A stretch of DNA of 64,000 nucleotides from Selaginella moellendorffii (GCF_000143415.4 NW_003314262.1:857878-921877); one strand, 5' to 3'. Numbered from the stretch's first letter, positions 7,863-45,880 are shown. Translations and numbers: made by a program. Notes: generated from the letters alone by a model not told the origin.

Positions 7863-8058
7863 CCTCGTGAGAGTGTTTTCTTCCTTCAGCAGAATCCAAA
7901 ACCTAGCAACCGTTTTATATGCAACAATGGAGGAGCAGCGTACGCGCAAAATTTCAAATAAACTTTTTCTCATTAAGTACTGCAAGTCTGGATCGATTGA
8001 CGTGTACCACATGGAACAAAACAAAACGCAATGGCACAGCAATTTATAAATATTATAC

Positions 8059-13767: not shown

Positions 13768-13894
13768 TGGCAGGAACCCTAGAGACTTGGTGCGGTGGGT
13801 GTCTAAAATTCAAATATTTTAGTATGACACCTCATCAACTTGATATATTGGTAATTTGTCATTAGTTTGTTTTGCGCCTCCTCAGACAGACCGC

Positions 13895-21979: not shown

Positions 21980-22727
21980 TTGCCTTGGTTCCTTTAGTGA
22001 GTTATCTTCTCATGAACACTGGGTTTAAGCAAAAGTCTTTGGCCTTACATTGCCTTACCTTTAAATCCTGGGCCTCCATCCTAAATTGTTCTCCTCGAGC
22101 ATTTGCCAATACCACAAAGTTCCTACTTTGTCTATGCAAGACTACTAGAAATCGATTAAATCAATCCATCCTGAAAATCATGTCAAATCCCATCATGTCT
22201 AACATGGTGAAATCCATGTCCATTTTTTATGTGTTTACTTCTACTCTTGCTTGTCAAAGTGCTTCATTGATGCTTTAGTTACCTTGAATAAACTTTATAG
22301 TCCTTGGTTCACCCAACTGCGGGATTATTAGTCTGGCTTGCCAGACTATATTTACAACCACAAAACTATCTGAAACACTTGTGTTAATAAGGATCTTAAC
22401 AAAGTTACTTCTAATCTTCCCTCAGAAGGCTAGTAGATATTGTAGTTAATGAGTTACTTTTAGCTAGGGTTTATCTCATGTACCTCAGTTTGGACTTCAC
22501 CAAACTTAATGGCCATATTGACTCTAGCCTTGTTCGGGGATTCACTCTTAAAGAAACTCTTCTTGAATTTCCTTTTGCCATATGTCCTTTTTACTTTAGC
22601 TCATTTTCTAAATGTGGATCCCAACCCTTTTGTGTTCCTTTTTCATAGGTTATCATTGAAATGCACCTTAATAGTTGCTTGCAATGCTTCGTTGGGTTTC
22701 AATGCATCACCTCGCCTTAAGCCCAAC
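21980..22727 (-). mobile_element. Decayed Ty3/gypsy gag-protease relic, same family as the element at 32007-37230
   Basis: DNA is colinear with ~34320-35230 (e.g. atcatgtcaaatccc, tagtccttggttc, ataaggatcttaacaaag, ggttatcattgaaatgcacct). Confidence 0.85.
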
Positions 22728-24487
22728 TTTGAGGGTGAAAGCCTAAAGCATTCGTTTCCTAGACACTGGAGGGTTTGGTGAGCTCCAAAAGTATAATAAG
22801 GGGAGGACTCTAGTGGAGCGAGTTTAGCCAGGAAAGGCTAGTGTGACCAAGGAAGGCTATACCAATATGTTGGGTGGTGATATAACCATTAAGGAGTCTA
22901 AAGCTAAAGTGAATATGGATAAACAAATGGGGTAATTTGCTGAAGTGTTCAAGAGCCAGTTCTAGCTCCCTCTAGGGATTGGATGGTCGATGCTCCCAAT
23001 CCAAGTGCGGGTGGCACTACTTACTTGGATACCTAGTGTGGTTCATCAGGACCTCACTCTATCCATATGGGTAGGGCACCAAAAAGTAGAAGGTGGGGAG
23101 AGTACCCATGAAGCTCGTGTAAGGCCATAGTATTTTGAAATGTTGTCATAGAGTCCCAGATTGAGGAAAGGAAGAGCAATAGTTCTCTTGTGTGGTGACT
23201 AAGAATGCGGTCATGTGGGAAGGAAATCCCAAAGATCAATAGGATGTAGTGGTTGAGCCTTTAAGCCTTGACTTAGTGGCAATGTTGGTGAACATGGTTG
23301 TGAATGAAAAAGGACTTGCTAGGGATTGAAAAAGAGATATTTGGGAAGGTTATTCCCCTATCTATGGGCATCCTAAGGATGCTAAAGAGTGGATTTAGGA
23401 TAATCACTCATGGATGGATGGTTTAGTCTTTGAGAGACAGGAGTGTGATGTAGGTGGTGTTGGATCATCAGTGTGACAAAGGTGAATGGGCATGGCCTTA
23501 GTGTAACAGGCTGATATGGCAATGGTACCTTTGGGTGTCAGTCATGGGATTAAACACGTGGAGCACTTGGACTAAGTGCAAAAGTTGAGTGGCATAGATG
23601 CCATTCTCGGGGCTAGCAAGTCCCCAACTCTGGAATAGAACTTATGGAGGTTATGAATGAAAATCCTCCAAGTGGTCAAAGGTGTGGTTAAAGGACTAAA
23701 GTAGAATGGAAAACTTTGTCGCTTACAATTTGGTATTATAGTTATTTCTTAGTCTAACTTTTATTGGTGGTTAAATATATCACCACTTGTCTTGGCATTG
23801 AAAGGTTCTAAGAGTGGGCCTATCTTGGAGGAGTAACATGTCGAAAGGGCATGACTCTCCACTTTAATTCATAAGTGAATATGTTGGTAATGTGGTGGAT
23901 AGAAAGGGCCAATTTGTTAACAACTTTAGGATCTTTGGAATAGTATAAGGTTTTCCTTAAAGAGTTGAGGATGTGATCCAGATGTGAGTTTGACTGAGCA
24001 AACTGGCTAATGTGGTTGTGGTAAACAACTATAGTTAGGATCACAAGAAAGAGAGACTCTAAGACAATAAAAGAGTCACAATATTATCCTCATATAGTTG
24101 ACTCTAGTGCTCATGAATTTAAGACTAGAATTAATGACCATGGGAGGTTAAATACGGATAAGGACACAAGTTCTTGAAAAGGTAGCTGGGGCTATTTTTA
24201 ATAAATGTTAGAACAACCCAAGAAATTGAGGATATACTTAGAGGATGAGTCAGCATTTTCATTATTTGGACGAATAGTCCTAAGGGGCAAAGGTAGCCCA
24301 TAGGGAACAAAGAATAATCAAATGTCAGAGTAACATTTGCAAAAGATGGTCCTTATGAGTAGGACATGAATATAAGAAGTTGTATTTTAGTTGGCACCTT
24401 AAAAGTAAGACCTTTTAGATCGTCAGATTAGCAAAGTCCAAAAACTAAATTATTCAAGTGGAGTCAAGGTATAGTTTTAAAGGATTG
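22728..24487 (+). mobile_element. Old copy of the non-coding LTR element, left part: partial LTR ending ...gcttaca at 23727, degenerate PBS and the start of the internal region
   Basis: Colinear with 25265-26890 but AT-decayed, with an extra ~130-bp segment near 23965-24095. Continues at ~37230. Confidence 0.85.
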
Positions 24488-24705
24488 TGTGAAACACAAA
24501 ATCCCTAGGCCCCAAAGTGGAGCCAGAAGGGCGCCACATGGTAGTGGCCGAAGCGAGAGCCAAACGAGCGTAACACGTTTGGACCAAAAGCTCCGACTTG
24601 AAAAGTCAAGAGCAGGAGTGGAACTCCCAACGAAGTGCTCGAGGAACGAGCACGAAGCGAGCAAAAGGCAAGGCTCCAAAAAGGGACCCAAAAGTGGGAG
24701 TGTCC

Positions 24706-25120
24706 GAGATGGACTCGAGATGGAGTCCGAGATGGAGTCCGAGATGGACCCGAGATGGAGTCCGAGATGGAGTCCGAGATGAAGTCCGAGGTGGACCCGA
24801 GATGGACCCGAGTTGGAGTCCAAAGTGGAGTCCGAGATGGACCCGAGATGGAGTCCGAGATGGAGTCCGAGATGGAGTCCGAGGTGGACCCGAGATGGAC
24901 CCGAAATGGAGTCCGAGATGGACCCGAGATGGAGTCCGAGATGGAGTCCGAGATGGAGTCCGAGGTGGACCCGAGATGGACCCAAAATGGAGTCCGAGAT
25001 GGAGTCCGAGATGGACCCGAGATGGAGTCCGAGATGGAGTCCAAGATGGACCCGAGATGGACCCGAGATGGAGTCCGAGATGGAGTCCGAGATGGAGTCC
25101 GAAGTCAAGACCGAGACCGG

Positions 25121-25152
<32 letters not shown>

Positions 25153-25260
25153 TCGGGACCGAGACCGAGACCGAGGCCGAGGCCGAGACCGAGCTCGAGC
25201 CCGAGTCCGAGTCCGAATCCGAATCCGAGTCCGAGTCCGAGTCCGAGTCCGAGTCCGGAG
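24706..25260 (+). repeat. Minisatellite in LTR: GAGATGGAGTCC/GAGATGGACCC 11-12-mers, then GAGACC and GAGTCC hexamers
   Basis: Directly visible. Homologous arrays lie at ~30420-31010, ~36895-37175 (reverse) and ~44570-44915 (decayed). Confidence 0.97.
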
Positions 25261-25339
25261 CCTGAGAGGGTGAAAGCCCAAAGCGTTCGTCTCCCAGACC
25301 CTGGGGGGTTTGGTGAGCTCCAAAAGTATAGTAGGGGGG

Positions 25340-28300
25340 AGGACTGCAGTGGAGCCAGTTTGGCCAGGAAAGGCCAGTTTGGCCCAGGAAGGCCAGACCC
25401 AGTGTTGGGTGATGAACTGACCACTGGGAAGTCCAAGACTAGAGTGAATACGGACCGACAAGCGGGGTAGCTTGGTGAAGTGTTCAAGAGCCAGCTCTAG
25501 TTCCCCCGGGAGATCGACTGGCCGATGCTCCCAGTCCAAGTGTGGGTGGCACTACCTACTTGGATACCAAGCGTGGCTCAATGGAACCTCGCTCTAAGCC
25601 CATGGCTAGAGCACCTAAAGGCGATAGGTGGGGAGAGTACCCAGGTGGCTCGCGTAAGGCCACGGTGTTCCGAAATGTTGTCCCAAAGGCCCAGACTGTG
25701 GAAAGGAAGAGGAGCAGTCCTCTGGGGTAGTGACCAAGGACACAGTCATGTGGTGAGGAAGTCCCAGAGGACCGTGGGACTTAGTGGTCGGGCCTGTGGG
25801 CCTCGATCCAGTGGCAGTGTTGGCAAACACGGCTAGGGGCAGAAAGGGACTTGGTAGGAACTGACAAAGGGACTTTGGGGAAGGCAATTCCCTAGGTCTG
25901 TGGGCATCCTAAGGATGCTAAGGAGTGGATCTAGGATGACCCCTCGTGGACACATGGCCCAGTCTTGGAGAGACGAGGTGGTGATGCAAGTGGTGTTGAA
26001 CCACTAGTGCAGCAAAGGTGAATGGGCATGGCCTTAGCGTAACGGGCCGAGATGTCAGTGGTACCTTTGGGTGTCGGTCTCAGGACCGGACACGTGGAGC
26101 ACTTGGACCAGGTGCAAGTGTGGAGTGGCATGGATGCCATTCTTGGGGCTAGCAAGTCCCGAGTCCTGAATTGGATTGATGGAGGTTGTGAATGAGACTC
26201 CTCCAAGTAGTCGGAGGTGTGGTTAAGTGACTAAAGTAGAATGGAAAATTTAGTCGCTTACAATTTGGTATCGGAGCTGTTCCTTAGTTCGACTTTTATT
26301 GGTGCTCAAGTATATCACCACTAGTGTTGGCATCAGAAGGTCCGAGGAGTGGGCCTATCCTTGAGGAGTAGCAAGTCGGGAAGACATGGCTCTCCATTAC
26401 AGTTCATGTGTGAACTTGTAGACGAGGTGGTGGATAGAAAAGGGCCAATAATGGAACGACTTTGGGATCTTGGGAACAGTGCAAGGTTTTCCTCATATAG
26501 TTGAGGTTGGTGCTCATGAATGTGAGACCAAAGGTAATGACCGTGGAAGGTCAAATACGGAAGAGGACCTCAAGTCCTTGAAATGGTAGCCGGGGCTACC
26601 TCTAATAAATGCTGGAACAACCCAAGGAGTTGGGGGTGTATTAAGTGGATGAGTTGGTATTCTCATCACATGGACAAGTAGTCCTAAGGGGCAAAGGTTG
26701 CCCCCAGAGAACAAAATCAAGTGTCGGAGTAACACTTGTGAAAATAGTCCTTTTGAGTAGGACTGGAATGCAAGAAGTGTATTCCAGTGAGCTAGTGCCT
26801 CATAAGTAGGACCTTACGGGTCGGTGGATTAACCAAGTCCAAAACTGCTAGACGACTCAAGTAGAGTCAAGGGATGGTCCTAAAAGGACTGATAGAAGCA
26901 TTTGGACTGAGCTGCGTTGTACCCCACAAAGGATGGGGGGGGGATCATAGGATCCAAGGATGAGAACAGAGAGTATCTCATCGATGGCAAAATGTGCCAT
27001 GCTAAAGTTATGGGAAAGGTGTTCCCAGAAGAAAACAACTTTGACATAAAGTTGTGTGTGACCTCTATGGTGTAGTGCTAACGGATGGTTGGCATGAGAA
27101 AGAGCGGTGTTGGTCTTGGCAAAGACTTAAACACGAAGGGGAAGTGTCATAGAGGTAGGCTCGTGGAGCTGATGGTGTGGAGACACCAAATGTGCCAAGG
27201 TGTGATACCTTGAGGCTATGTTGGTGGGTTCATGAGAACCCCTTGCCAAAGGAATCCCAATTGGAATGGGAATGGCATAGCCTAAGCGGCAGAGCATGCA
27301 GTTAGAGTGCGGTGACCCAGATAATGATGGAGGTGTGCAAGCACCAAGCAATGAGTTGTAGGACTTGACAACCATGAGGCAACTAAGCAAGAGGTGCAAA
27401 ATAACTGGTTAAATGGGTAGAAGGTAGCTACCCAAGACTTCTAGTATAGGGAAGTCGGATATACCCTTACGGGGGATAAGTTGCTTATGTTGCGATATAA
27501 TAAGTCAATGTCATAAAAGGAAATACTCATTGTCAAGAAAGCCATCATTGGGACACCTGAACATTCTAGAACACCAGAAGGTGGTGTTTGATGTCGCGAG
27601 GGCAATGGATAAAGCCCAAGCGACTAAGTCCCTAGCGAATGATGGATAGAAGGTGCTATCCAAATGTCCAAGGTTGCGGAGACAGGAGAGGACTGTTTAC
27701 CCGAGTTGGACAAAGCCAAAAATGAAATTTTGGCAAGGCTAGTGATGGGCATGTAAAGGCCCATAAGCAACAATGTAATCCCAGTGTGTTGGATTATAAG
27801 GTGAGCATACCCGGATTGAGGAACCACTCCCTAGGCTATTGGGTAGGTTCATCCCTAAGAATACTTGCTAAGGCATGATAGAAAGTGCAAAGCTATCCTC
27901 CTGGTCTGGAGGAGAATGACCAAAGGAAAGGTGTGAAGCCAAAAAGCAAGAAGTAAGGGGATAGAACCGAACCATAGGAATCAAAGGGCATAACCAAGGT
28001 TGGTTATGCCAGCTGGGAGTGGAGAATCAAGAGGGTGCTCGAGGATGTTGTTGCTAGCAACCGTGATGCCATAGAGAGTCTAAAATATGGAATTGTCCAT
28101 GTTAGACTATATGGCAACTATAAAGCTTGCGAAAGGGGAGGCCTTAGCAAGCTGAGGGACAGAGTTCCTTCAAGGTTCCCAAAGACGATTCTAGGTAGCG
28201 TAGTACCTAGAAAGGCCAAGTGTAAATGATTCATGGAACGCGCGAAATCAGAGTGGCGCAGCAGAAGCGTGGTCTTGAAGCTTGCCATGAGGCAAGGTTA

Positions 28301-30040
28301 TCAAGGTTAGGGAAGTAGTTCCCGAGTGTTCAAAGAGAGGGCTTTGAACGAAAGTCGATGGTCAAGGACTTTCACGCTTATGCAGGAACCATGTTACAAT
28401 GGTCGGAGAACTTGCCAAGTGAGATTGGCACGTCGGGGGAACAAAGACCCTAGTTGAAGGTGATAACTTCAAAAAGGGTGGGCCATGGGGCCGAGCATGG
28501 AGGAGTCCATGCATGATCACAGACATGTCAAGTGAGAGGACTTGGCAGTGTGGAGGAACTAGGTTCCTAAGCTGTGATCTGTAGCGCACTTTAAAAATAA
28601 GTTGGTGCACCGGCGTGGGGAGTCACGCCAGGCATCTAGTGTGATGCCATCCGTAGATGCATATACGGAGGTTGGGTTCGAGTCCCGACCCTCTAGTGCT
28701 TGGGTTCGAGTCCCAAATCACTAGGGCGTGGTGATGGTTTGGAATATGAGGACACTCATATTTCGGTGGTCATGGACTCTCAGTGGGGAGACTGGTTTGG
28801 GCACACCGCCAAGCGAGGGATGCCTCGGAGTCGTGATGCACGGTTAGATTGCTTAGTGTGAAAGCTCAGCATATCTAACTTGAACACTTTGGTGCAAGTG
28901 GCACCAAGGTCGTGGTGAGTGAGATGGGGACACCTAATCTCAGTTGCTATGAACCCTTGGCCGTAAGGGCTAGCTTGGGTGCACCGCCAAGTGTGGGGGA
29001 TGCCCCCGGGGTTGTAGTCAACAACTTGGAGGTCTAGAAAACCAAGTACCTCTTGGCAACTCTGTTAAGGTGCTAAGGTGAGATCACTAGGTGATCTTAT
29101 GGCCAGATAAGGACAAGGTCCTTGGTTGGCTAAGGAATGAAGTTCCTGGTTCAAAATGTTGAAATTGAACTGTTTAAGGTGGTGTGGCTTGGTCGTGATA
29201 ACCAAGTGGGAAGAGCACCTAAGGGAAAATAAACTATGTCCGTGCGATGGCATAGTGAGTCCGAGGAAAGTAGTCTCTATAAAAGACCTATGGGAGGGTC
29301 ACGAAGTTGGGCCGTGGATAGAGCCCATAGCAGAAGATGCTAAAGAGACGTACTAGGGGTGAACGTCCTCCGGACTTGGCAAAGAAGCGTCTTTGCTATG
29401 GAACCGAAACAATACCTCAAGGAGGGAGGTAGAGATTCGATGTTGCTTGGTGCAACAATCAACGGATAGGAGCAAAAGATGAGTGGCCAAGATAGGGCCG
29501 TGGAATCCCTTGGAAGGAATCCAAGTGACAAAGTTAGGCGAGGAACATTAATGTGTTGGATGCTAACAAGTTGCGGGAAAGGAAGTGTGTTTCCAAGGAG
29601 GGATTCCGAAATGCTCCGAGTTGGCGAAAGTGGAAGCTCCAAGGGAGGGAGCGGTAAGGTAGCCAAATGATAGGGCCATGAACAGCCCTAGCACAAAGCA
29701 TGATAACTGGAACTTTGGCACGAAATAGAAGAGAGGATGATGGTGCCCTCGAGTAGAGAACTTCCTAGGATGGGAAGTGGAGTTGCACAAAAGGTGCAAG
29801 GCAAGGTGTCGGAGACACCTAGGAAATTGACTCCAAGAAGTCAAAAATTCAAAGTTCCAAAGTGCAAAGGTTATATCGATGGAAATTGAGACTACTCGAG
29901 AAGGAGTAGTGGGATTGACTTAGAGAAGGGTCTCTAAGAGGTTTAGCGAGAACTAAACCAATAAAAGGATGAACCATTACATGTGGTCCAATCAGTCTCT
30001 AAATTGGAGAGACTACGCTCCTTAAAGGATGGACAAGGCA
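25340..30040 (+). ncRNA. Candidate giant structured RNA (continuous chain of short stem-loops) forming the distal LTR and internal region of the non-coding element
   Basis: Dozens of adjacent 5-8 bp hairpins read by eye, e.g. 26401-26416, 26585-26600, 27035-27055, 27226-27241, 27643-27662, 28612-28690, 29804-29820, 29891-29910 and 29919-29938. Confidence 0.65.
26266..26277 (+). promoter_or_regulatory. Primer-binding site complementary to the initiator tRNA-Met 3' end
   Basis: TGGTATCGGAGC lies 3 nt after the LTR end; the plant consensus is TGGTATCAGAGC. Confidence 0.9.
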
Positions 30041-30419
30041 AAAGATGGTCCTTATGAGTAGGACATGAATATAAGAAGTTGTATTTTAGTTGGCACCTTA
30101 AAAGTAAGACCTTATAGATCGTCAGATTAGCAAAGTCCAAAAACTAAATTATTCAAGTGGAGTCAAGGTATAGTTTTAAAGGATTGTGTGAGACACAAAA
30201 TCCTTAGGCCCCAAAGTGGAGCCGGAAGGGCGCCACATGGTAGTGGCCGAAGCGAGAGCTAAACGAGCGTAACACGTTTGGACCAAAAGCTCCGACTTGA
30301 AAAGTCAAGAGCGGGAGTGCAACTCCCAACGAAGTGCTCGAGGAACGAGCACGAAGCGAGCAAAAGGCAAGGCTCCAAAAAGGGACCCAAAAGGACCAAC
30401 ACATGACACGTGGGAGTGT

Positions 30420-31010
30420 CCGAGATGGACTCGAGTTGGAGTCCGAAGTGGAGTCCGAGATGGACTCGAGTTGGAGTCCGAAGTGGAGTCCGAGATGGAC
30501 CCGAGTTGGAGTCCGAAGTGGAGTCCGAGATGGACCCGAGTTGGAGTCCGAAGTGGAGTCCGAGATGGACCCGAGATGGAGTCCGAGATGGAGTCCGAAG
30601 TGGAGTCCGAGGTGGACCCGAGATTGACCCGAGTTGGAGTCCGAAGTGGAGTCCGAGATGGACCCGAGATGGAGTCCGAGATGGAGTCCGAGATGGAGTC
30701 CGAGGTGGACCCGAGATGGACCCGAAATGGAGTCCGAGATGGACCCGAGATGGAGTCCGAGATGGAGTCCGAGATGGACCTGAGATGGACCCGAGGTGGA
30801 GTCCGAGATGGAGTCCGAAGTCGAGACCGAGACCGGGACCGAGACCGGGACCGAGACCGAGACCGAGATCGGGACCGAGACCGAGGCCGAGGCCGAGACC
30901 GAGCCCGAGCCCGAGTCCGAGCCCGAATCCGAGTCTGAGTCCGAGTCCAAGTCTGAGTCCGAGTCCGAGTCCGAGTCCGAGTCCGAGTCCGAGTCCGAGT
31001 CCGGAGTCTG
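30420..31010 (+). repeat. LTR minisatellite, second copy (adds GAGTTGGAGTCCGAAGTG variants)
   Basis: Directly visible tandem GAGTCC/GAGACC-based units. Confidence 0.97.
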
Positions 31011-32006
31011 AGAGGGTGAAAGCCCAAAGCGTTCGTCTCCCAGACCCTGGGGGGTTTGGTGAGCTCCAAAAGTATAGTAGGGGGAGGACTGCAGTGGAGC
31101 CAGTTTGGCCAGGAAAGGCCAGTTTGGCCCAGGAAGGCCGGACCCAGTGTTGGGTGATGAGCTGCCCACTGGGAAGTCCAAGACTAGAGTGAACATGGAC
31201 CGACAAGCGGGGTAGTTTGGTGAAGTGTTCAAGAGCCGGCTCTAGTTCCCCCGGGAGATCGACTGGCCGATGCTCCCAGTCCAAGTGTGGGTGGCACTAC
31301 CTACTTGGATACCTGGTGTGGCTCAACGGAACCCGCTCTAAGCCCATGGCTAGAGCACCCAAGGGCAGAAGGCGAGGAGAGTACCCAGGTGGCTCGCGTA
31401 AGGCCACGGTGTTCCGAAATGTTGTCCCAAAGGCCCAGACTGTGGAAAGGAAGAGGAGCAGTCCTCTGGGGTAGTGAGCAAGGACACAGTCACACAGTGA
31501 GGAAGTCCTAGAGGATAGTGGGACTTAGTGGTCGGGCCGGTGGGCCTCGATCCAGTGGCAGTGTTGGCGAACACAGCCAAGGACAGAAAGGGACTTGGTG
31601 GGGACCGGAACAGAGATATTGGGGAAGGCTATTCCCCATGTCTGTAGGCATCCTAAGGATGTTAAGGAGTGGATCTGGGATGATCACTCATGGATGGATG
31701 ACCCAGTCTTTGAGAGACGGGATTGGAATGTAGGTGGTGTCGGGCCACCAATGTGACCGAGGTAAATGGGCATGGCCTTAGCGTAGCAGGCCGATATGCC
31801 GGTGATACCGTGGGGTGTCGATCATGGGATCGGACATGTGAAGCACTTGGACCAAGTGCTAAGGTTGAGTGGCATGGATGCCATTCTAGGGGCTAGCAAG
31901 CCCCAAGTCCTGAGTTGGGCTTATGGAGGTTGTGAATGAGACTCCTCCAAGTGGTCGGAGGTGTGGTTAAGTGACTAAAGTAGAATGGAAAAATTAGTCG
32001 CTTACA

Positions 32007-35000
32007 GTGAGTTGTTATAACACATTTCCGCAGGTCCCAAATGACTTACCCAATCGGTCTGGTCTCCCGAGACATAGCATCGCAAATAATCCTCCAGCTG
32101 CCTATTCACCCTTTCCGTTTGTCCGTCTGTCAAGAAGTGTTAGTGCAAACAACTTGACTTAATACCCCATACCTGTCTGTGGGTGATAGGCTGTGCTAAA
32201 TTTCAACTTGGTGCGATACTATTCCAGGAGAGTCCTCCAGAACCTACTGGTGAAGATCTTATCTCGATCTGAGATGATCTCTTCCGGTCTTCCCCGCACT
32301 CGAACCACTTGTTCGAAGAATAGCTTTGCCACACCTTCCGCATCCACCTCCGTTGTGGTGGGTATGAAATGTGCCATTTTCAAAAATCGGTCCACCACCA
32401 CGAATATCGCATCAAACCCCTCGCTTGGGGGGAGTCCCGTGATGAAGTCCATCGTAAGATATTTCCACGGATGATCTGGAATTGGGATGCTTTGCAACAA
32501 GCCCCCACTAGCCTTAGTCACGGCTTTTACCTGCTGACATGTTGGACATGTCTTTACATAGTCTTGGACGTCCTTAGCCATATCTGGCCAATGGTACTTC
32601 CTCTTGAGTAAGCCCATCGTCTTGGGCACTCCGCCGTGTCCCGCAACAGGTCCGTCATGACACTCTTCTAATGCCACCTTCCTTAGTTCCCCTTCTGGAA
32701 CATACACCCTCGTTTGCTTGTAATAGATGAGTCTGTTGCGTTCCGCATAGCCCGTTTTTCTCTTCCGTTGGCAGCTCACCTCTCTGGTGAGCTTCCCGTG
32801 CCTCTAGATTCCTCAGCAACACTTCTTGTGCTAGACCATCGTTCTCATATGCTGTCCGCACATCGTCCCAGAAGGTTGCTGTTGCACTGGATATTGCCAA
32901 CCTCAAGCTCGCTTTTTGACTTAGCGCATCTGCCACAATGTTGCTCTTCCTAGGCTTGTACAGAATCTCGCAATCAAACTCGGCCAAGGCATTGGCCCAC
33001 CGACCTTGTTTCCCTCTTAGGTCGGGTTGTGACAAGAAGTGTTTCGTTGCCACATTGTCCGTGTAAACCTTGAAGTGTCTCCCAAGGTAGTGTCGCCACT
33101 CCTTGAGTGCCTTGACCACCACAAACAATTCCTTCTCGTGGGCAGGCCACTTCCGTTGAGCCTTGTCCAACTTCTTCGAGAAGAACGCTACCGGATCGTT
33201 GTCTTGCTTCAAAACTGCGCCCAACACAAAGTCCGAAGCATCCATTTCTACCTCAAAGTCCTTACCAAAGTCTGGTAATGCCAATACAGGAGCCTTCCTC
33301 AACTGCCCTTTGAGGTGGACAAATGCCACCTCGCATTCCGCTGTCCACACCATCTTCCCTTTTCCTGTTTGGTCCGTTAAGGGCAGGGCTACTCTCGAAT
33401 AGTGTCTGATAAACTTTCGATAGTAGTTGCATAGCCCCAGGAATGCCCTCAACTCGTATACATTCGGTGGTCGCTCCCATTCCTGGATCACTTGGACCTT
33501 CTTCGGGTCCACCTTGAGCTCGTCCTGGCCCACCACATGCCCGAGAAGCTTTACCTCTTGTTGAGCAAAGTCACATTTGCTCTCTTTAGCATACAGTTTG
33601 TGTTCCCTTAGTTTCTCAAACACCTTCGCCAAGTGTTCGGCATGCTCCTCTAGCGTCTCGCTATAGATCAGGATGTCGTCGATATAGACGACCACGAAGT
33701 GATCCAGATAGGGTACAAAGATGTGGTTCATTAGCGCCGAAAACGTTGCCGGCGCATTACATAGCCCGAAGGGCATCACCAGAAACTCAAAGCTCCCATA
33801 CCTCGTTCGACAAGTTGTCTTCTCGACATCTTCCTCGGCTACCCTGATCTGGTAGTATTCTGACCTTAGGTCAATCCTCGAGAAGTATTTTGCCTTTCCC
33901 AACCTATCGAACAGGTCCTCAATCCTTGGCAAAGGGTACTTGTTCTTCTTTGTATACTTGTTGAGCAACCGGTAATCTATGCACATGTGCATAGATCCAT
34001 CTTTCTTTTTCACAAATAACACCAGCGCCCCATACGGCGACTTGCTCAACCTAACATACCCTTTGTCCACCAACTCCTCTAGTTGGCACTTGAGCTCCTT
34101 GAATTCTTTTTCGTTCAAACGATAAGGGGGACGAACCACTGCCTCAGCACCCTCGACTAGCTCAATCTTATGTTCTATCGGTCGTGCTGGGGGTAGCCCC
34201 GCCGGTAGCTCCTCCGGCATGGTATCCTGGAATTGGTCCAACACCCGCTAGATCACTAAAGAACTTCTTCCATTCCTGTCTTTTCGTCACTCTTCACCGA
34301 GAGTAAGCACAAAAAGGCCGCCTTAGTTCCTTTAGTGAGTTGTCCTCTCGTGGACACCAGGTTTAAGCAGGAATCTTTAGCCTTGCTTTGCCCTACCTTT
34401 AGATCTTGGGCCTCCACCCTAGATCTTCTTCCTTGGGCATTCGCTAGTACCACAAGGTTCCTACCTTGTCCATGCAAGGCCACCACGAATCGATTGAACC
34501 AGTCCATTCCGAAGATCATGTCAAATCCCGCCATGTCCAACACGGTGAAATCCATGTCCACCTTCCAAGTCCCCACTTCGACTCTCGCTTGTCGAAGTAC
34601 CTCATCGGTGCTTTGGCTACCTTGAACAAACTCTATAGTCCTTGGTTCGCCTAGCCGCTGCACCGTTAGTCCGGCTTGCCGGACTATGTCTGCAGCCACA
34701 AAATTATCCGAAGCACCCGTATCAATAAGGATCTTAACAAAGCTACCTCCGAGCTTCCCTCGGAGGGCTAGTAAATGTCGCGAACGACTCTCTACCAAAG
34801 TTGCTCGTGTAATGAGTAACTTTGAGTTAGGGACTGGATCACATACCTCAGTTTGGACTTCACCCGACTTGATGGCCATATTGGCTCTGGCCTTCTTCGG
34901 GTAGGGACATTCCCTCGAGAAGTGTCCCGCTTCCCCACAATTGTAGCATACGTTGTTTCCCACGCTGCTATACGACTTGACCTTCTTATCTGTGGGTTTG

Positions 35001-37230
35001 TCTCTTTTCGCTTGACTCCCCCACATACTCACTCGCTGGCCACCGGATTTGCTTTTCCGAAACCCCGAGGACTCATTCTTAGAGAAACTCTTCTTGAATT
35101 TCCCTCTGCTAAACGTTCCCCTTGGTTTGGCCCCTTTGCTAAACGTGGATCCCGACCCTGTCGTGTTCCCCTTTTGCAGGTTATCATTGAAATGCACCTT
35201 GATGGCCGCATCCAACGCTTCCTTGTAGTTGGTCGGGTTCCACCGCATCACTTCACCGCGAGCCCAGGTTTGCAAACCTGATATAAAGGCATGGAACGCA
35301 TCCATATCCCCCATATCCGTGACAAGTATCCTCTTTGCCATAAACCCATTCTCATACTCCTGAATGGTTCCGGTCTACTTCAGCCTACTCAGCTCGTCCC
35401 TTAGATGCAGAGTAGCATTCGGAGGAACGTAAGTTGCGCGGATCCTCACCTTTATCATTTCCCAAGTGGCCACTGGTCCTTCGTTGGCCTCTGTTGTTCT
35501 CCACCAAGACTTGGCATTATCTGCCAAGTATGGTTTTGCATATGGGACCTTCTCCGAGCTCGGTAATCGCAACGCTCGGAAGTAGTCCTCCATATCGTAA
35601 AACCAATCCTCCACCACCTTATAGTCGTTCACTCCCTTAAAGACCGGTGGGGGCTTTGGTTTGTACTTGGGAACTGCCTGAAGGACTGATTCCACTTCGG
35701 TCTGTTCGACCTTGTCTGGTTTTACCTCAATCCTTGCCGAAGGTTTCGCACCTTCTGCGCTGCCAGCATCCGCAGTCTTTCGCTTTTTCTTCCGCTTCTC
35801 ATCACGCTTTAGCTTGCGTACGAGAGTCTCTAACAGGGCATTGGTCTACGCCAATTGTCCTTCTAGAATGTCCAATCGAGCCTTGGATGACCAAACCTCA
35901 CCACCAGACTCCTGTTTGAAAGTTGCTTCACTGGAGTCCTCCTCATGCAAGGATTCCTCATCCATAGCCTCCTGTTCGACCGGAGGCTCCAGCTCTGGAG
36001 GAGGTTCCGTCTCCGCCTGGGTTCGCTTACGTCCTGCCCTTGCCATCTCCCAGCAATCCGCCTCTATCCTTCGCTAGAGCTGAGGAAGAGGCTCCGATAC
36101 CAAATTGTAAGCCACAAATTTTTCCTTTCCAATTTGCTAGCTTACCTCGTCTATCCGACCAACTCTGCCTTGGCTTGTGCTAAGTTCCCTCGCCAAGGTT
36201 CCCGCGTATGGTACCAGCTCCTACTTGGTCCTACTTGGTTTCAGCTACTCACTGCACGAGCAACGGAGTGTTAGCCATCCATCTACGGATTCCCAAATCT
36301 CTCCCAATCCCCCTCCCTGGGTTAGACTAGACTTAAGGTTCAGCTACACTCCCCGCAGGCACAAGCAGCCAAGCACACCAAGCCTCTAGATTCCTAACAC
36401 CCCTTGGTACCAGAAGACTTGATCATGGGACCCTCTAAATCCCAAGTCTTGGGTGCAGCACTTGCTTCGGGACGTCGGGGCGAAACACCGTGGCCTAACG
36501 GCCCAGTATGGGTACCTCTACCCCCCCCACTTCCATCCCGAAGGGAAGGCCCAAGCTCCTAGGAAGGGCGAGGACCAATGAGCCACAAGGTACTCAAGTA
36601 GGGCACCACTCCACATGAGCCGGGAGCACCGCAGTCGGTTTCCCTTTCGGGAGTGGGAGCTGCTCTTGAGCACTTCCCTGGGTGGCCCCTCCGGCACCAC
36701 TCAAGCCCATGCTCACTCCCACCCAAGGCCCCTCGGCCCCAGTCTCAACCTCAAGTCAGTTTGGAAGCACCACTGGAGAGTTCCTTCAAGACTGGTTCCT
36801 GGACCTCACTATCCCTACTATACTTTTGGAACCCCCTGCAGCCCCCCCCCCAGGAGACGCACGCTTTGGGCTTTCACCCCTTGACCCGTATTAGTATTTG
36901 GACTTAGTCTCTGGCTCGATCTCGGACCTGATTTTGGATCTGACTTCGGATTCAGTCTCGGACTCGATCTCGGGCTCGATCTCGGACCCGATCTCGGACC
37001 GGACCTTGGACTCGACCTCGGACTCGGTCTCGGACCCAATTTCGGATCTCGGACTCCGTCTCGAACTCGGTCTCGAACTTGGACTCGAACTCGGTCCCTG
37101 AGTCGGTCTCGGACTCGATTCCGGACTCTATCTCGAACTCGGTCCTAGAGTCGGTCTTGGACTCGATCCTCGACTTGGTCCCATCCGATGAACTCTTTGT
37201 CATTTCGGTCAAGCTTTTGGGGATCCTTTA
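32007..37230 (-). mobile_element. Ty3/gypsy LTR retrotransposon (chromovirus-like pol), pseudogenised and truncated within integrase; 5' LTR ~36106-37230
   Basis: gag starts at ATG 36046. Motifs include the zinc knuckle CYNCGEAGHFSREC, protease [24 protein letters not shown], RNase H and integrase H-H-C-C and MDFITGLP. PBS TGGTATCGGAGC is at 36102-36091. Several in-frame TAG stops (35846, 35375, 34256) and frameshifts are present. Confidence 0.95.
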
Positions 37231-40200
37231 TGGGGAGTTGGTTCCTTACACCTATAAAGGATGGGGAGGATCATAAGTTCCAAATATGAAAAAAATAGAT
37301 ATCTCATTAATGACAAAAAATACCATAGTAAAGTCGTGGGAAAGGTGTTCCTAAAAGAAAAAACTTTGGTATGAATACTATGGTGCAATGTTAATTGATA
37401 GTTGGCATGAAAAACAACTGCTTTGGTCTTGGGAAAGTAAACACAAGTGAAAAGTATCATGAGAGTAGACTTATAGAACTGATCCCAAGTGTCTCAAGGA
37501 GGCCTTAAAGTCAAGTTGGTTGGTTCATAAGAACCCTTTGCGGAAAGAATATTAATGGAAATGGGATTGGTATAGCCTCAGTTGGAAGGCATGCAATTTA
37601 AGTGTGTGGACCCAAATAATAATGAAGGTGTGAAAGCACTAATAATGAGTTATAGGACTTGACAACTATGAGGCGATTAAGCAAAATATGTAGCATAATT
37701 GATTGGATTGGTAGAACTTAACTTCCCAAAACTTTTTATTGGGATAAGAAGGTTAAATATATCCCATCGGGGGATAAATTGTTTATGTTGCAATATAGTA
37801 AGTTAATATCATAAAGGAAAATACTCATTATCAAAGAAGGCCATCATTGGGATATCTAAACACTCTAAAACACCAAAAAGTGGTGTTTGATATTATGAGG
37901 GCATTAAATAAAGCCCAATGGACTACGTCCCTAAAGAATAATGGATAAAAAGTGCTATTCAATATCCAAAGTTGTGAAGACAAGAGGAGTCTATTTATTC
38001 GAATTAGGCAAAGCCAAAAAGGATTTTGGCAAGGCTAATGACAGGCATATAAAGGTCCATAAGTAGCAATGTTAATCTTAATGTATGGGATTATGAGGTG
38101 AGCATATCCAGATTGAAGAACCACTCTCTAGGCTATCAGGTAAGTTCATCCCTAAGAATACTTGCTAAGGCATGGTAGAATGTGCAAAATTATCCTTCTA
38201 GTCAGGAGAAGAATAACCAAAGAAAACGTATGAGGCCATAATCAAGTAGTAAAGGGATAGAATCAAACTATAGTAATTGAAAGGCATAACAAAGAGTGAT
38301 TATGCAAGTTGGGAGTGGAAAATCAAGTAGGTGCTCAAAAGTGTTGTTACTGACAGTTATGATGCCATGGAGAGTCTAAAGTGTGGAATTATCCATGCTA
38401 GACTATATGCAAATTAAAAAGCTTGTGGAAGGAGAAACTTTAGCAAGCTAAGGGATAAAGTCCCTTCAAAGTTCCCAAGGACAATTTTAGGCAAGTTAGT
38501 ACATAGAAAAATAACTATAAATGGTTCATAGAACGTATAAAATCAGAGTGGTGTAGCAAAATTATGGACTTGAAGCTTACCATAAGGCGAGGCTATCAAG
38601 GTTGGGGAAGTAGTTCCCAAGCATTCAAAGATATGACTTTGAATGAAAATTAATGGTTAAGGACTTTCACGTTTATGCATGAAACCATGTTATGCTGGTC
38701 AAATGACTTGCTAAGCGAGATTGGCAAGTTAGGGGAATAAAGATTCTAATTGAAGGTGTTGACTTCAAAAAGGTTGGCCCATAGGGTCAAGTATGGAGGA
38801 GTTTATACATGATCACAGATTTGAAACTTGCCATAAGGCAAAGTTATCAAGGTTGGGGAAATAGTTCCCAAGCATTCAAAGAGATGGCTTTGAATGAAAA
38901 TTAATGGTTATAGACTTTCACTCTTATGCATGAAACCATATTATGTTAGTTAGATGACTTGCTAAGCAAAATTGGCAAACCAAAGAAACAAAGACCTTAA
39001 TTAAAGGCGTTAACTTCAAAAGGGGTGGCCTATGGGGCCAAGCATGGAGGAGTCTATACATGATCACAGATTTGTTAAGCGAGAGGATTTAGCAGTTTAG
39101 AGGAACTAAGTTCCTAAGCTATGATCCGAAGCACTCATTGAGTATAATTTTATGCACTGGCATGGGGAGTCACGCCAGGCATCTTAAGTGATGCCATCTA
39201 TAGATGCATATATGGAGGTTGGGTTTGAGTCCCAACCCTTTAATACTTGGGTTCAAGTCCCAACTCATTAAGGCATGGTGATGGTTTGGAATATGAGGTC
39301 ATTTATCTTTTGGTGGTCATAAATTCTCAATAAGGAGATTGGCTTGGGCACACCACTAAGTGAGGGATGTTCCAGAGTCATGATGCATGGTTAGATTACT
39401 TAGAGTGAAAGCTTGGTATATCTAAACTGAACACTTTGGTGTAAGTGGCACTAAAGATGTGGTGATTGAGATGGGGACACCCAATTTCAGTTATTATGAA
39501 CCCTTAGCAGGAAGGGCTAAGTTAGGTGTACCACCAAGTGTGGGGGATGCCCCTAGGGTCATGATCAACAACATAAAAGTCTAAAAGACCTAGTATTTAT
39601 TAGCAAACCTATAAGGTGTCAAGGCTAGATCATTAGGTGATCTTATGGCTAAATTAGGACAAGTTTTTATGAGGTTAAGGAATAAGGTTCCTAGTTTAAA
39701 ATATAAATTTGAACTATTAGTAATTATGTGGCTTGGTCAAAGTGACCAAGTGGGAAAGAAATCTAAGAGAAATGAACTGCAACAATGTAGTGGTATTGTG
39801 AATCCAAGAAAATAATATTTAAGAAAAGGACTTATAGGTGGGTCGTAAAGTTGAGCCGTGGATAGAGCTTATAGCAAAAAATGCTAAAGAGAGCTACTAG
39901 AAGTGAACACCCTCTAGACTTGGCAAAGCAGAACCTTTACTATAGAATTGAAAAGATATCTCAAGGATAAAGGTAGTGATCCTATATTCCATGGTGCAAC
40001 AATCAAAGGATAGTAGTAAAAGGTTAGTGGCTAAGATTGGGTTATGGAAATCATTAGAAGGAATCTAAATGGCAAAGTTAGGCAAGGAACACTCATGTGT
40101 TGAATGCTAACGAATTGTGGGAAAAGACATATGTTTTTAAAAATGGATTGCCAAATACTCCAATTTAGCAAAAGTAAAAAGCTCTAAAAGAGATGGAATA

Positions 40201-40440
40201 GTGAAGTTGCCAAATAACAAGACTATAAATAACCCTAGCACAAATTATGGATGAGTGGACTTATGCTAATAGTGGCATGAAATAAAAGAGAGGATGATGG
40301 TGCCCTCTAATAAAGAACTTCCTAAAATGGGAAAGTAGGGTTTGCATAACCAATGCAACATAAGGTGTCAGACACACCTAGGAAGTTGACTTTGAAAAGT
40401 CAAAATTAAAAGTTCTAAAGTGTGATAGTTATGTTGATCC
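37230..40440 (+). mobile_element. Old copy of the non-coding element internal region (continuation of 22728-24487), with a ~250-bp tandem duplication at ~38570-39070
   Basis: Colinear with ~26900-29880 with many C->T/G->A changes. Confidence 0.88.
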
Positions 40441-41893
40441 CCAAGTCTGAGTTCAACTAGAGTCCGAGGTCGAAGCCCATGACTGACATCCAAAGGTACC
40501 ACTGACATATTAGCCCTTTACAGGCCATGCCCATTCATCTTTGTTACATCGGTGATCCAACACCACTTGTATCACAGTCCCATCTCTCAAAGACTGAGCT
40601 ATCTGTTCATGATTGACCATCCCAGATCCACTCCTTAGCATCCTTAGGATGCCTACAGACATGGGGAACAACCTTCCCCAATATCACTTTTTCGATCCCC
40701 ACCAAGTCCCTTTCCGTCCATGGCTGTATTTGCCAACACTGCCATTGAGTTAAGGCTCAAAGGCCCACCATTGACTTCTAGGACTTCCTTGCCACATGAC
40801 CACATCCTTGGTCACCACATAAGAGGACCACTCCTNNNNNNNNNNNNNNNNNNNNNNNNNNNNNNNNNNNNNNNNNNNNNNNNNNNNNNNNNNNNNNNNN
40901 NNNNNNNNNNNNNNNNNNNNNNNNNNNNNNNNNNNTGGCCAAACTCGCTCCACTACAATCTTCCCCCTACTATAGCTTGGGAGCTCACCAAACCCCCTAG
41001 GGTCTAGAAGACGAATGCTTTGGGCTTTCACCTTCGGACTTGAACTCAGACTTAAACTCGGACTCAAACTCAACCAAGGCATGGAACACATCTATGTCAC
41101 CCATGTATGTGACAAGGATCCTCAGACAAGGATTGGGATTGGGACGTGGTTTTGGTTTTGGTCTTGGTCTTGGACTCTTTATCGGCCTCAACCTCGGACT
41201 CTTATTCAAGTTTGAGTTCCAGTCTGAGGGTGAAAGCCTAAAGCATTCGTCTCCTAAACCCTAGGGGGTTTGGGGAGCTCTAAAAGTATAGTAGGGGGAG
41301 GATTGTAGTGGAGCGAGTTTGGCCAGGAAAGGCTAGTGTGACCAAAGAAGGATATACCCATATGTTGGGTGGTGATATAACCATTGAGGAGTATAAGGCT
41401 AGACTGAATATGGATAGACAAGTGGGGTAGCTTGCTGAAGTGTTCAAGAGTCAGCTCTAGCTCCCTCGGGGGATTGAATGGTCGATGCTCCCAATCTAAG
41501 TGTGGGTGGCACTACATACTTGGATACCTGGCATGGCTCATTAGAATCTTGCTCTAGCAACATGGGTAGGGCACCCAAAGGTGGAAGGTGAGGAGAGTAC
41601 CCATAAGGCTCATATAAAGTTGTGGTGTTTTGAAATGTTGTCCTAACAAAGATGAATGGGCATGGCCTTACTATAATAGGCTAATATGTTAGTGGTACCT
41701 TTGGATGTCAGTCATGGGATTGGATATATAGAGCACTGGGACCAAGTGCAAAGGTTGAGTGGCATAGATGCCATTCTCGGAGCAAATCCCTAAGTTTGGA
41801 ATAAGACTTATGGAAGTTGTGAGTAAGACTCCTTCAAGTGGTCGGATGTGTGGTTAAGGGACTAAAGTAGAATGGAAAATTTAGTCACTTACA
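40440..41893. mobile_element. Jumble of LTR fragments of the non-coding family in both orientations (reverse ~40480-41040, forward ~41225-41893), a short gag scrap (~41078-41125) and an N gap at 40836-40935
   Basis: The gggtgaaagccc...ctccaaaagtatagtagg motif is present on both strands. The forward fragment ends ...cacttaca at 41893. The gag scrap matches 35288-35335. Confidence 0.82.
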
Positions 41894-44800: not shown

Positions 44801-45880
44801 GGAATATAAGATGGAATATGAGAAGGGGATTGAGACTAGGACCAAGACTAAGACCAAGACTAAGACCAAGACCGAGATTGGGGCTGAGACTGAGTTTGAG
44901 CTTGAGTCCAAGTCCGCAAAGTGATCATCTCCTAAACCTTAGGTGAGCTCCAAAAGTATAGTAGGGGGGAAGACTTTAGTGGAACCAGCTTGGGTAGGAA
45001 AGGTTAGTGTCACCAAGGAAGGCTATACCCATGTGGTGGGTGATGATATAACCACTGAGGAGTCCAAGACTAAAGTGAACATTTACAAATAAATGTGGTA
45101 ATTTGGTGAAGTATTCAAGAGCAGGCTATAGCTCCCCCAGGAAATCGAATAATCAATGTTCCCAATGTAGGTGTGGATGGCATTACCTACTTGGATACCT
45201 GGCATGGCTCATTAAAACTTCACTCTAGCCATATGGCCAGAAGCAAAAGATGGGGAGAATACCCACGAGGCTTGTATTGGGTTGTAGTGTTTCAAAATGT
45301 TGTCCCAAAGTCCCAAATTGTGGAAAAGAAGAAGAGCAATCCTCTTGTGTAGTGACCAAGGATATGGTTATATGGTAGGGAAGTCCCTGAGGTCAATAGG
45401 ACTAAGTGATCAGTCTTCGGGCCCTGACATAATGGTAGTATTACCGATCACGGCCATGGACAAAAAGGGACTTAGTGGGAACTAAAAAAGGGATATTGGG
45501 GAAAGTTATTCCCTATGTCTCTAAGCATTGTAAAGATGCTAATGTGTGGTAATGGAATGACCCTTCATAGACAGATGGCCTAGTTTTTGGGAAATGACTA
45601 TAGTATGGATGGTCTTGGACTACCCACGAGACAAAAATGAATGGCTATAGCCTTAGTGTAATGAGCTAATATATCAATGGTACTATTGGGTGTCTGTTGT
45701 GGGATTGAACATGTGGAGCACTTGGACCAAGTGCAAAGGATGAGTGGCATAAATGCCATTCACAAAGTTAGCATATCCCCAAGTCAAGAATAAGACTTAT
45801 GAAGGTTGTGAGTGAAATTCCTCCAAGTAGTCAAAAGTGGGTTAAATGATTAAAGTAAAAAAAAAAATTAGTTGCTTACA
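41894..45880 (+). mobile_element. Third decayed copy of the non-coding element: 3' part of the internal region, purine-rich tract and 3' LTR (44356-45880)
   Basis: Colinear with ~27895-30040. GGGTGGTGGAG lies just before TGTGAGAC at 44356, and the LTR ends gttgcttaca. Confidence 0.88.
42768..42929. mobile_element. 162-bp insertion, probable solo LTR
   Basis: Flanked by the 5-bp TSD GTTTG (42763-42767 and 42930-42934). Termini are TGTAG...CTATA. It is absent from the homologous sites at 28737 and 39283. Confidence 0.8.

Follow-up and report, generated by a model that had tools for sequence, protein, structure and literature searches.

The window, a 64,000-nucleotide stretch of the Selaginella moellendorffii genome (GCF_000143415.4 NW_003314262.1:857878-921877), contains on its + strand an LTR element with a hairpin-bearing interior, here called element B, a Ty3/gypsy element on the opposite strand, and further copies of the element B family, A, C and D (Table 1). 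The two LTRs of element B begin with TG (24347/30046), both end in TTACA, and are 88.7% identical overall in a direct-repeat comparison, with 96.7% identity at the start and 89.7% past the 12/6-nt tandem arrays that lie within the 5' LTR at 24702-25257 (TRF). Both a PBS after the 5' LTR (TGGTATCGGAGC) and a purine run before the 3' LTR (AAAGGATGGACAAGGCAAAAGA) are found; we take the former to differ at one position from the tRNA-iMet PBS that is usual in plants, and the latter, from its position, is a candidate polypurine tract. The original prediction had assigned 25340-30040, or 4.7 kb, to the hairpin-bearing RNA, which is too long, because the LTR repeat runs to 26262/32006 and is then followed by the PBS, leaving an interior of 3.77 kb. 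No target-site duplication was found around element B, the flanks being AAAGA (5') and GTGAG (3'), and on the 5' side it joins the older copy A colinearly, from which it follows that copy B has been rearranged. Part of the interior also resembles the LTR, in that positions 26742-26884, the last 143 nt of the segment colinear with 24084-24481, repeat the LTR start at 76%.

Table 1. Coordinates of the element B family and the adjoining Ty3/gypsy element, counted from the first letter of the window.
Feature	Position	Strand	Basis or detail
Copy A	22731..24338	+	3' kilobase of an older LTR (78% to B) plus 611-nt interior, colinear into the 5' LTR of B
5' LTR of element B	24339..26262	+	TG at 24347; GCTTACA end at 26256-26262
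Non-coding internal domain with hairpin chain	26263..30037	+	3,775 nt
PBS-like TGGTATCGGAGC	26266-26277	+	Starts 3 nt past the 5' LTR end; read in the sequence
Segment colinear with 24084-24481	26487..26884	+	Sequence comparison
Five adjacent hairpins	28612..28731	+	Last two carry GGTTCGAGTCCC
Polypurine-tract-like run AAAGGATGGACAAGGCAAAAGA	30025-30045	+	Directly before the TG of the 3' LTR
3' LTR of element B	30038..32006	+	GCTTACA end at 32000-32006; abuts the gypsy integrase region
Ty3/gypsy element	32007..37250	-	gag, CCHC knuckle, protease, RT, RNase H, integrase (Pfam)
LTR of the gypsy neighbour	about 37250-36106	-	Sequence comparison
PBS of the gypsy neighbour	36102-36091	-	12-mer identical to that of element B, same GCTTACA-ATT context
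Copy C	37256..40438	+	Decayed interior, 78% identical to B 26928-29880
Copy D	40936..45880	+	Decayed LTR-interior-LTR copy

The longest ORF of the element B interior, 108 aa, is antisense, and ten ORF pieces from the interior match no Pfam family at E ≤ 1. Comparison of the interior with the neighbouring gypsy element by tblastx and blastn gave nothing (best tblastx E 0.36), and a tblastn search of the interior gave nothing significant with 127 retroelement proteins, made up of 120 RT-RNase H proteins and seven ORF translations (gag, protease, RT, integrase) from both gypsy elements of the window. One weak antisense alignment recurs at 28471-28671 (E 0.2-0.9), the queries being non-independent, and was judged to be noise. 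With the LTRs, the PBS and the PPT-like run in place and these searches empty, the description of the locus as a non-coding LTR element holds, and tblastn, which the original prediction had named as the search that might expose a decayed protein-coding sequence, found no coding relic in the interior. Hairpins do occur in the intact helper CDS as well, as would suit an interior that is decayed gag-pol or other coding sequence with incidental hairpins, but the short antisense ORF and the three empty searches all argue against such an origin and we consider its probability to be close to negligible. Element B is, in our assessment, a LARD-type non-autonomous LTR retrotransposon with an unusually extreme hairpin architecture.

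The adjoining Ty3/gypsy element, whose integrase is cut off at 32007, has the LTR end, the PBS, tandem 12-mers and two LTR motifs in common with element B. Because the LTR end, PBS and LTR motifs are shared, it represents the probable helper lineage, and on these cis sequences element B belongs to, and is probably mobilised by, this lineage.

The interior is far richer in hairpins than chance would allow. Counting perfect stems of at least 6 bp with loops of 3-12 nt, there are 57 hairpins in 26263-30037 compared with 6.7 ± 2.4 in dinucleotide shuffles (z about 20), and the excess extends to stems of at least 7 bp (23 against 1.3-2.0) and of at least 5 bp (103 against 26). These stem-loops, of 6-10 bp, increase in density from 10 to 19 per kb toward the 3' end. 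The local MFE (span 40) of the interior is -1106 kcal/mol while shuffles give -785 ± 24 (z -13), 300-nt pieces have folding z-scores of -5.1 and -6.8, and 57% of bases are paired in the MFE structure (51% in shuffles), such that the predicted density above chance is borne out by both the hairpin count and the energy. The LTR part at 25340-26262 is also in local-fold excess (z -8.1). The transcript-forming part of the element, made up of the R-U5 part of the LTR and the 3.8-kb interior, consists throughout of about 100 short, perfect Watson-Crick stem-loops of 5-10 bp, and the single strands that lie between the stems and close them as loops are rich in purines and poor in C. All ten hairpins that were originally quoted lie where they had been placed, as does the 8-bp stem AGGCTATG/CATAGCCT with smaller hairpins enclosed, and the stems are indeed mutually unrelated rather than a tandem repeat, the lone exception, and the only tandem repeat of the interior, being a 28-nt doublet at 28672-28731. 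On the other hand, "almost unbroken" overstates what is a strong excess, in that perfect hairpins of at least 5 bp cover 45% of the interior bases (12% in shuffles), and the linkers described as A-rich are purine-rich but not specifically A-rich (A 0.31, G 0.31). Long-range 5'-3' pairing was set aside, since an 11-nt perfect pair such as 26293/29957 is to be expected by chance.

The architecture is specific to one retroelement lineage. Seven control stretches of the window are all at expectation, and the controls without the excess include a second gypsy element, at 58-63 kb (z +0.8), and a host gene (z -0.6). The neighbouring pol, which had been suggested as a control, does show a weaker excess than the interior, about half its strength, but the helper CDS is not free of it: the gag-pol CDS contains 22 hairpins where 5.8 are expected, has a local MFE z of -10.6, and includes eight-bp perfect stems inside its long ORFs. 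Expressed per kb, the energy excess is 85, 75 and 48 kcal/mol for the interior, the LTR and the helper CDS, respectively, and is thus higher in non-coding than in coding sequence.

We now put forward, with a probability of roughly 0.45, the proposal that element B is a LARD-type element mobilised by the gypsy lineage and that selection on the sense RNA for packaging preserves its hairpin array. The architecture would be maintained by selection on the single-stranded sense genome, where short hairpins, each exposing unpaired G or A, could provide many docking sites for the CCHC knuckle of the helper Gag/nucleocapsid, and such multiple sites would lead to efficient packaging in trans of an RNA that encodes no protein. 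Every duplex would remain far below Dicer length, the purine linkers, being unable to pair with one another, would limit long-range pairing, and the parasite, freed from coding constraint, carries this lineage trait at about twice the density of the helper. In a retrovirus, unpaired purine loops are Gag-binding packaging determinants (PMC8096270). The CCHC knuckle in the gag-pol of the helper lineage counts for the proposal, as does the presence of the excess in the helper CDS together with its absence from the second gypsy element and the host gene. The ancestral age of the hairpins, a longest perfect inverted repeat of 11 bp and the very high copy number, all described below, speak for it as well, and the loop composition given next is its only strand-specific support.

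Signals specific to the sense strand are limited to purine-rich, C-poor loops and a purine-rich 5' arm. The purine fraction of the loops is 0.71, compared with 0.60 in shuffled-sequence hairpins and linkers, and none of 5000 permutations reaches 0.71; loop C content is 8% rather than 17%, and G is present in 57 of the 57 loops of the interior. Purines are also enriched in the hairpin loops of the helper CDS, at 0.68 compared with 0.58. Of the two stem arms it is the 5' one that is rich in purines, as the background is, with a ratio of 18:5 among stems of at least 7 bp. A motif search in the loops of the element B hairpins revealed purine richness only and no shared motif.

The remaining strand evidence is negative. 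The original prediction had interpreted G.U pairs as a sign of selection on the sense RNA. G.U accounts for a fraction of 0.10 of the pairs in the interior and is rarer than in shuffles (0.17), the one-mismatch stems of element B (7 G.U, 2 A.C and 18 other) fit purine-rich flanks and local composition, and the stem mismatches of the decayed copies (51 G.U, 41 A.C) are without asymmetry. The two strands do not differ in energy excess (-322 and -311 kcal/mol), and the - strand folding z-scores are equal to or stronger than those of the + strand, which is the outcome that the prediction had itself named as telling against it. With element B, the decayed copies and the two-strand energies all negative, the G.U asymmetry was rejected. 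Both the equal energy excess and the under-representation of G.U count against the packaging proposal, as a constraint acting only on RNA should tolerate G.U. They are as expected if the structure matters in DNA or on both strands, with minus-strand cDNA hairpins or cruciform-prone DNA affecting integration, recombination or chromatin. However, the loop composition is strand-specific, cruciform extrusion in duplex DNA needs longer stems than those of 5-8 bp with 3-12-nt loops, and we know of no role for such hairpin arrays in cDNA, which makes this explanation a very improbable one.

Perfect Watson-Crick stems, few G.U pairs and a strand-identical excess are also what copying would give. The array may accordingly be a mutational by-product in which short intramolecular template switches, that is, snap-back copying of the nascent strand, make or perfect inverted repeats for which no function is needed, and these accumulate where they are not selected against (the LTR and the non-coding interior) and less in the coding region. 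Published work shows that perfect hairpins can arise and be maintained through template switching (PMC8794818, PMC5453318), and the non-coding to coding gradient in energy excess points the same way, as do the arm polarity, where the 5' arm resembles the background and the 3' arm is copy-like, the absence of a covariation signal, and the restriction to one lineage with nothing in the second gypsy element, as expected of one reverse transcriptase. Indeed, a template-switch origin explains the perfect stems at least as simply as packaging, Gag-decoy or Dicer-avoidance roles. Copying does not, however, predict loops that significantly exceed linkers and chance hairpins in purine content and are significantly poorer in C, stem length reaches only about 10 bp and the long inverted repeats that template switching also produces are missing, all hairpins compared are ancestral with no private clustered gain among B, C and D, and the eight-bp perfect stems in the helper ORFs would need many tolerated multi-codon changes. 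We regard this origin as possible, though on the unlikely side.

The decayed copies place the hairpins in time. The stems of element B recur, eroded, in copies C and D (the latter missing the PBS and 1.6 kb from the start of the interior, with an assembly gap at about 40761-41000), and the architecture thus dates back to the ancestor that the copies in the window have in common. At columns defined by B, the divergence between C and D is 21% in stems, 26% in linkers and 29% in loops, a marginal difference in which the loops are the fastest-evolving part of the hairpins. Stem double transitions number 7 and 6 (13), against 9.8 and 7.9 (17.7) expected from context-specific decay, in a comparison of two old decayed copies with low power, so that the covariation check on the two available copies shows nothing beyond C>T/G>A decay. 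A two-fold excess of compensatory pairs obtained with uniform rates vanished when CG/CHG/CHH-specific rates were used. With RNAalifold on three copies the consensus energy was -243 kcal/mol on the + strand and -176 kcal/mol on the - strand, with covariation terms of -6.7 and +5.7, respectively. We give this better + strand consensus no weight, since that strand is rich in G+T and the counts are in line with neutral decay. The lack of a covariation signal, together with fast-evolving loops that have no motif in common, weighs against the packaging proposal. Searches for further relatives yielded no close copies in the protein collection with the 108-aa ORF, no match to the 22-mer of LTR end plus PBS in metagenome contigs, and, in the RT search, relatives of at most 63% identity.

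The decayed copies also show heavy methyl-C decay (CG 50%, CHG 35%), which marks the family as a target of host silencing. This would be in keeping with dense local structure having been selected, not for packaging, but as protection that hides the transcript from siRNA slicing and RDR/Dicer, with target sites buried in short stems and no duplex long enough to dice. The structural excess is the same as that behind the packaging proposal, the longest perfect inverted repeat of the interior is only 11 bp, and structured viroid RNA resists RISC. This protection would nevertheless leave the purine-rich loops and the arm polarity unexplained, and many sites would stay accessible since more than half of the bases lie outside perfect stems. 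We therefore consider protection from silencing to be an improbable reason for the array.

The element B family is of very high copy, with 115,510 contig pieces in one DNA run matching element B at an identity of at least 90%, many of them at 99% or more. Two further observations run counter to selection for packaging. RNA-seq raw reads on element B are almost absent (4 and 11 of 9.2 million), and the few there are point in both directions. In run X1, DNA contigs connect 26737 directly with 30038, meaning that the genome also has a short form lacking the 3.3-kb hairpin module and that the module is not indispensable for spreading. We hold as doubtful a more far-reaching version of the packaging proposal, in which the genomic RNA of the gypsy lineage is a series of about 100 purine-exposing stem-loops that serve as a multivalent Gag-recognition and anti-silencing coat, and the protein-less derivative is a "pure structure" hyper-parasite of double density that has out-multiplied its helper. 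As the trait reaches into the gag-pol reading frame of the helper, packaging signals would then be a genome-wide code and not restricted to the leader.

How protein-less LTR elements such as LARDs and TRIMs compete for helper capsids is a long-standing question, to which the usual answer is "conserved structure", and the LARD internal domain is said to specify a conserved RNA secondary structure (PMC7215508, citing a 2004 description). LARDs, for example Sukkula of the Triticeae, are like element B in their long LTRs, kilobase-scale non-coding interior, PBS, PPT and high copy number, and they depend on an autonomous gypsy-type partner, to which the adjoining gag-pol element with its common cis signals may correspond. 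The likeness is drawn from these descriptions, and LARDs as described differ in that element B has an 8-fold excess of short perfect purine-loop hairpins that reaches into the LTR and the helper CDS. Retroviral packaging signals (HIV-1 SL3 GGAG, and the single-stranded purines of MMTV and MPMV) are likewise short stem-loops that expose unpaired G/A and are bound by Gag/NC zinc knuckles (PMC8096270). They comprise a few hairpins in the 5' leader, whereas in element B about 100 are predicted along the entire RNA, and their loops have no motif in common. Our literature search found no retroelement described with such a hairpin array or with its extension into the LTR and helper CDS. The family is an unusually clean case (8-fold hairpin excess, z -13 to -17, lineage-specific), and as the signal is strong and graded from parasite to LTR to helper CDS in a family of very high copy number, decisive tests are practical.

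Template-switch hairpins share with those of element B their perfect Watson-Crick inverted repeats and strand symmetry and arise in one step (PMC8794818, PMC5453318), but they are described as scattered events of cellular DNA replication and not as a kilobase-scale array in one retroelement lineage. If the array did originate in this way, template-switch mutagenesis by a retroelement polymerase would for the first time have been seen to leave its mark on the kilobase scale, which would bear on the de novo origin of RNA hairpins. If neither selection nor a special mutational process is found, element B is an ordinary LARD with an odd composition.

TRIMs/Cassandra and retrozymes are likewise LTR elements that encode no protein and have an RNA module as their interior, which resembles 5S in Cassandra and is a hammerhead in retrozymes (PMC7215508, PMC4918200). 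They are below 1.5 kb and have one known RNA fold, unlike the 3.8 kb of unrelated hairpins in element B, which match no Rfam family; over 22000-47000 nothing exceeds the gathering score of any family, and the best hit, an unrelated scaRNA (E 0.083), is at chance level. Beside these RNA modules it should be noted that element B has a tRNA T-arm-like doublet of its own, in which GGTTCGAGTCCC, which resembles a T-arm/B-box, is present in the two units of the 28-nt tandem repeat at the end of the five adjacent hairpins. The T-arm-like hairpins have no tRNA match in Rfam, and the homologous site in copy D is called a pseudo-tRNA by ARAGORN (42628-42723), its sole call.

Element B is securely a LARD-type non-autonomous LTR retrotransposon with a real and extreme hairpin architecture. 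Counting perfect stems with loops of 3-12 nt against dinucleotide shuffles, we found 57 stems of at least 6 bp in its interior (6.7 ± 2.4 in shuffles), 23 of at least 7 bp (about 2) and 103 of at least 5 bp (26). With pair span limited to 40 nt, the interior MFE is -1106 kcal/mol versus -785 ± 24 kcal/mol shuffled (z -13), and fold z-scores on two 300-nt pieces were -5.1 and -6.8. All ten hairpins quoted in the original prediction are present, as is the 8-bp stem enclosing smaller hairpins, and the stems are indeed mutually unrelated, since tandem repetition within the interior is limited to one 28-nt doublet. The claim of an almost unbroken chain was overstated, as perfect hairpins of at least 5 bp cover 45% of interior bases (12% in shuffles), but the excess is large and specific (10-19 hairpins per kb versus 1-5 almost everywhere else in the window). 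No inverted repeat in the interior exceeds 11 perfect base pairs.

Window self-comparison placed the LTRs as a direct repeat of 88.7% identity, both copies terminating in GCTTACA, with a PBS-like 12-mer three bases past the first copy and a purine run directly before the TG of the second. The element start proposed earlier, 25340, falls within the LTR, just past its 12-nt and 6-nt tandem arrays. The LTR pair is 96.7% identical at its start and 89.7% beyond the arrays; this uneven divergence (25270-26262 vs 31012-32006), which consists mostly of transitions and rises from 3% where U3 begins to 10% across the GC-rich 3' kilobase, could reflect faster methyl-cytosine decay in the 3' kilobase or a hybrid LTR made by recombination. 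The arrays are variable, some of their units (GAGTCC-gagat-GGACTC) are hairpins in themselves, and their windows give the strongest + strand z-scores, down to -8. No target-site duplication flanks the element, which on its 5' side joins the older copy A colinearly and has thus been rearranged. The interior is non-coding, as predicted: no ORF exceeds 108 aa, Pfam gave no match at E ≤ 1, tblastx found no similarity to the neighbouring gag-pol element, and tblastn with 127 retroelement proteins returned nothing significant, so that decayed coding sequence is a highly improbable source of the interior. Rfam has no family matching it.

Features of element B and its surroundings, with excess local folding energy (kcal/mol per kb) by region
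Feature	Position	Strand	Content	Excess
Host genes, long exons	5000-18780	+, -, -	AP2-domain ORF (+); BIG/Sec7-type ARF-GEF (-); CFAP65-like cilia/flagella protein (-)	
Host gene				-3
Copy A	22731-24338		older family copy, short form	
Element B, first LTR	24339-26262		1.9 kb	
LTR tandem arrays	24702-25257; 30418-31012		12-nt (GTCCGAGATGGA) and 6-nt (AGACCG/GAGTCC) units	
B LTR, R-U5 part				-75
B interior	26263-30037		3,775 nt	about -85
PBS-like 12-mer	26266-26277		TGGTATCGGAGC	
Five back-to-back hairpins	28612-28731		last two, a 28-nt tandem doublet with tRNA T-arm/B-box-like GGTTCGAGTCCC	
Purine run	30025-30045			
Element B, second LTR	30038-32006		1.9 kb	
Adjoining Ty3/gypsy element	32007 to about 37250	-	gag, CCHC knuckle, protease, RT, RNase H, truncated integrase	
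Helper CDS				-48
Arrays in its LTR	36900-37180	-	related to those of B	
Copy C	37256-40438		family copy	
Assembly gap (run of N)	40761-41000		within cluster of family copies	
Copy D	40936-45880		family copy	
Second Ty3/gypsy element	58245-62917	-	gag, protease, integrase	+3

The adjoining Ty3/gypsy element probably belongs to the helper lineage of element B, judging from the sequence features that they have in common: the LTR end GCTTACA, an ATT spacer, a PBS identical at 12/12 positions, 12-nt tandem arrays and two further LTR motifs. Its coding region also has an excess of hairpins (22 vs 5.8 expected), whose loops are likewise rich in purines, and a local energy z of -10.6. The closest RT relatives in the protein collection reach at most 63% identity, and among the host genes the CFAP65-like one points to a land plant or alga whose gametes are flagellated. 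The second gypsy element lacks the excess (z +0.8) and is a useful internal control, which shows that the trait is lineage-specific. Because both this element and the host gene are near zero, the trait is confined to one retroelement lineage and is neither genome-wide nor general to retroelements. None of the literature searched describes short, perfect, mutually unrelated hairpins with purine loops that are arrayed over kilobases and shared, in graded form, by the LTR and the helper's reading frame. A 7-bp hairpin in the protease-coding region, ACAAGGT-agga-ACCTTGT (34452-34469), remains perfect in a 79% identical gypsy fragment (22133-22150 region) because G>A and C>T have occurred together, a single case compatible with chance.

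The original argument for selection on the sense RNA, drawn from G.U pairs, fails. The - strand shows an equal energy excess (local MFE -938 kcal/mol vs -627 kcal/mol shuffled, an excess of 311 where the + strand has 322), its folding z-scores equal or surpass those on the + strand, and G.U pairs are scarce (0.10 of pairs, below the shuffles' 0.17). One-mismatch stems comprise 7 G.U, 2 A.C and 18 others, mostly A.G, because purine-rich flanks yield such pairs by chance. Two features are strand-specific, namely loop composition and a purine bias of the 5' arm. Purines make up 0.71 of loop bases versus 0.60 in linkers or chance-hairpin loops, a value reached in 0/5000 permutations; C is reduced to 8% from 17%, G occurs in 57/57 loops, and the purine-rich arm is the 5' arm in 18:5 stems of at least 7 bp and 30:18 of at least 6 bp. 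A role of the hairpins in DNA or in the minus strand seems quite unlikely.

Copies C and D, 76-78% identical to element B, contain the same stems in eroded form, and the hairpins are therefore older than these copies. Their differences from B are mainly methyl-cytosine decay: transitions are most frequent at CG (50%), followed by CHG (about 35%) and the remaining C/G positions (23%), and drop to 7% where the base is A or T. Covariation did not exceed this decay in the two dead copies, which offer little power: 7 and 6 double transitions in stems compare with 9.8 and 7.9 expected from context-specific rates, and G.U (51) and A.C (41) pairs are balanced. At columns defined by B, C and D differ slightly less in stems (21%) than in linkers (26%) and loops (29%), a marginal contrast. 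RNAalifold favors the + strand, but this preference was rejected as structure evidence, being explained by composition.

We favor, at a probability of about 0.45, the reading that the array is kept by selection on the single-stranded sense genome, because of its loop composition, lineage specificity and presence in the helper CDS, and because the stems are ancestral and the family abundant. Short stem-loops would expose unpaired purines, which have a known role in Gag recognition (PMC8096270), along the sense genome, forming a multivalent putative Gag/NC docking array that could enable trans-packaging, with duplexes presumably too short for dicing. Strand symmetry, scarce G.U, absent covariation, fast-evolving loops and the existence of a short form count against it. 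Ranked second, and rather unlikely, is the reading that the hairpins arose by mutation, when the polymerase of this lineage made short template switches (PMC8794818, PMC5453318). This would account for stems that pair perfectly by Watson-Crick rules, for the strand symmetry, for the greater excess in non-coding than in coding regions and for the arm polarity, but leaves the purine loops and the upper limit on stem length unexplained. That the hairpins serve as armour against silencing is less likely still.

The family is very abundant and recently active: in one DNA run, 115,510 contig pieces match over 5.1 kb with an identity of ≥90%, and for 28,115 of these the identity is ≥99%. Raw RNA-seq gave only 4 and 11 reads of 9.2 million in two runs, in both directions, and a deletion derivative is represented by a 2.6-kb contig in a run guessed to be RNA. 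DNA contigs join 26737 to 30038, which reveals a short form, present genome-wide, from which the 3.3-kb module is missing; copy A is one, its 611-nt interior continuing colinearly into the 5' LTR of B. Interior segment 26487-26884 is colinear with 24084-24481, and its part 26742-26884 repeats the start of the LTR at 76% identity. This arrangement suggests that recombination or template switching between the two direct repeats converts long forms into short ones and back. Deletion derivatives beginning exactly at the LTR/PBS boundary seem recurrent; in copy D the LTR end is fused to interior position 27893 (41893/41894) with loss of the PBS, and a contig of the possibly-RNA run X15 joins 26263 to 28426. 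Rfam found no tRNA at the T-arm-like hairpins, ARAGORN reports a pseudo-tRNA at the homologous place in copy D (42628-42723), and they may represent a captured tRNA/SINE-like module.
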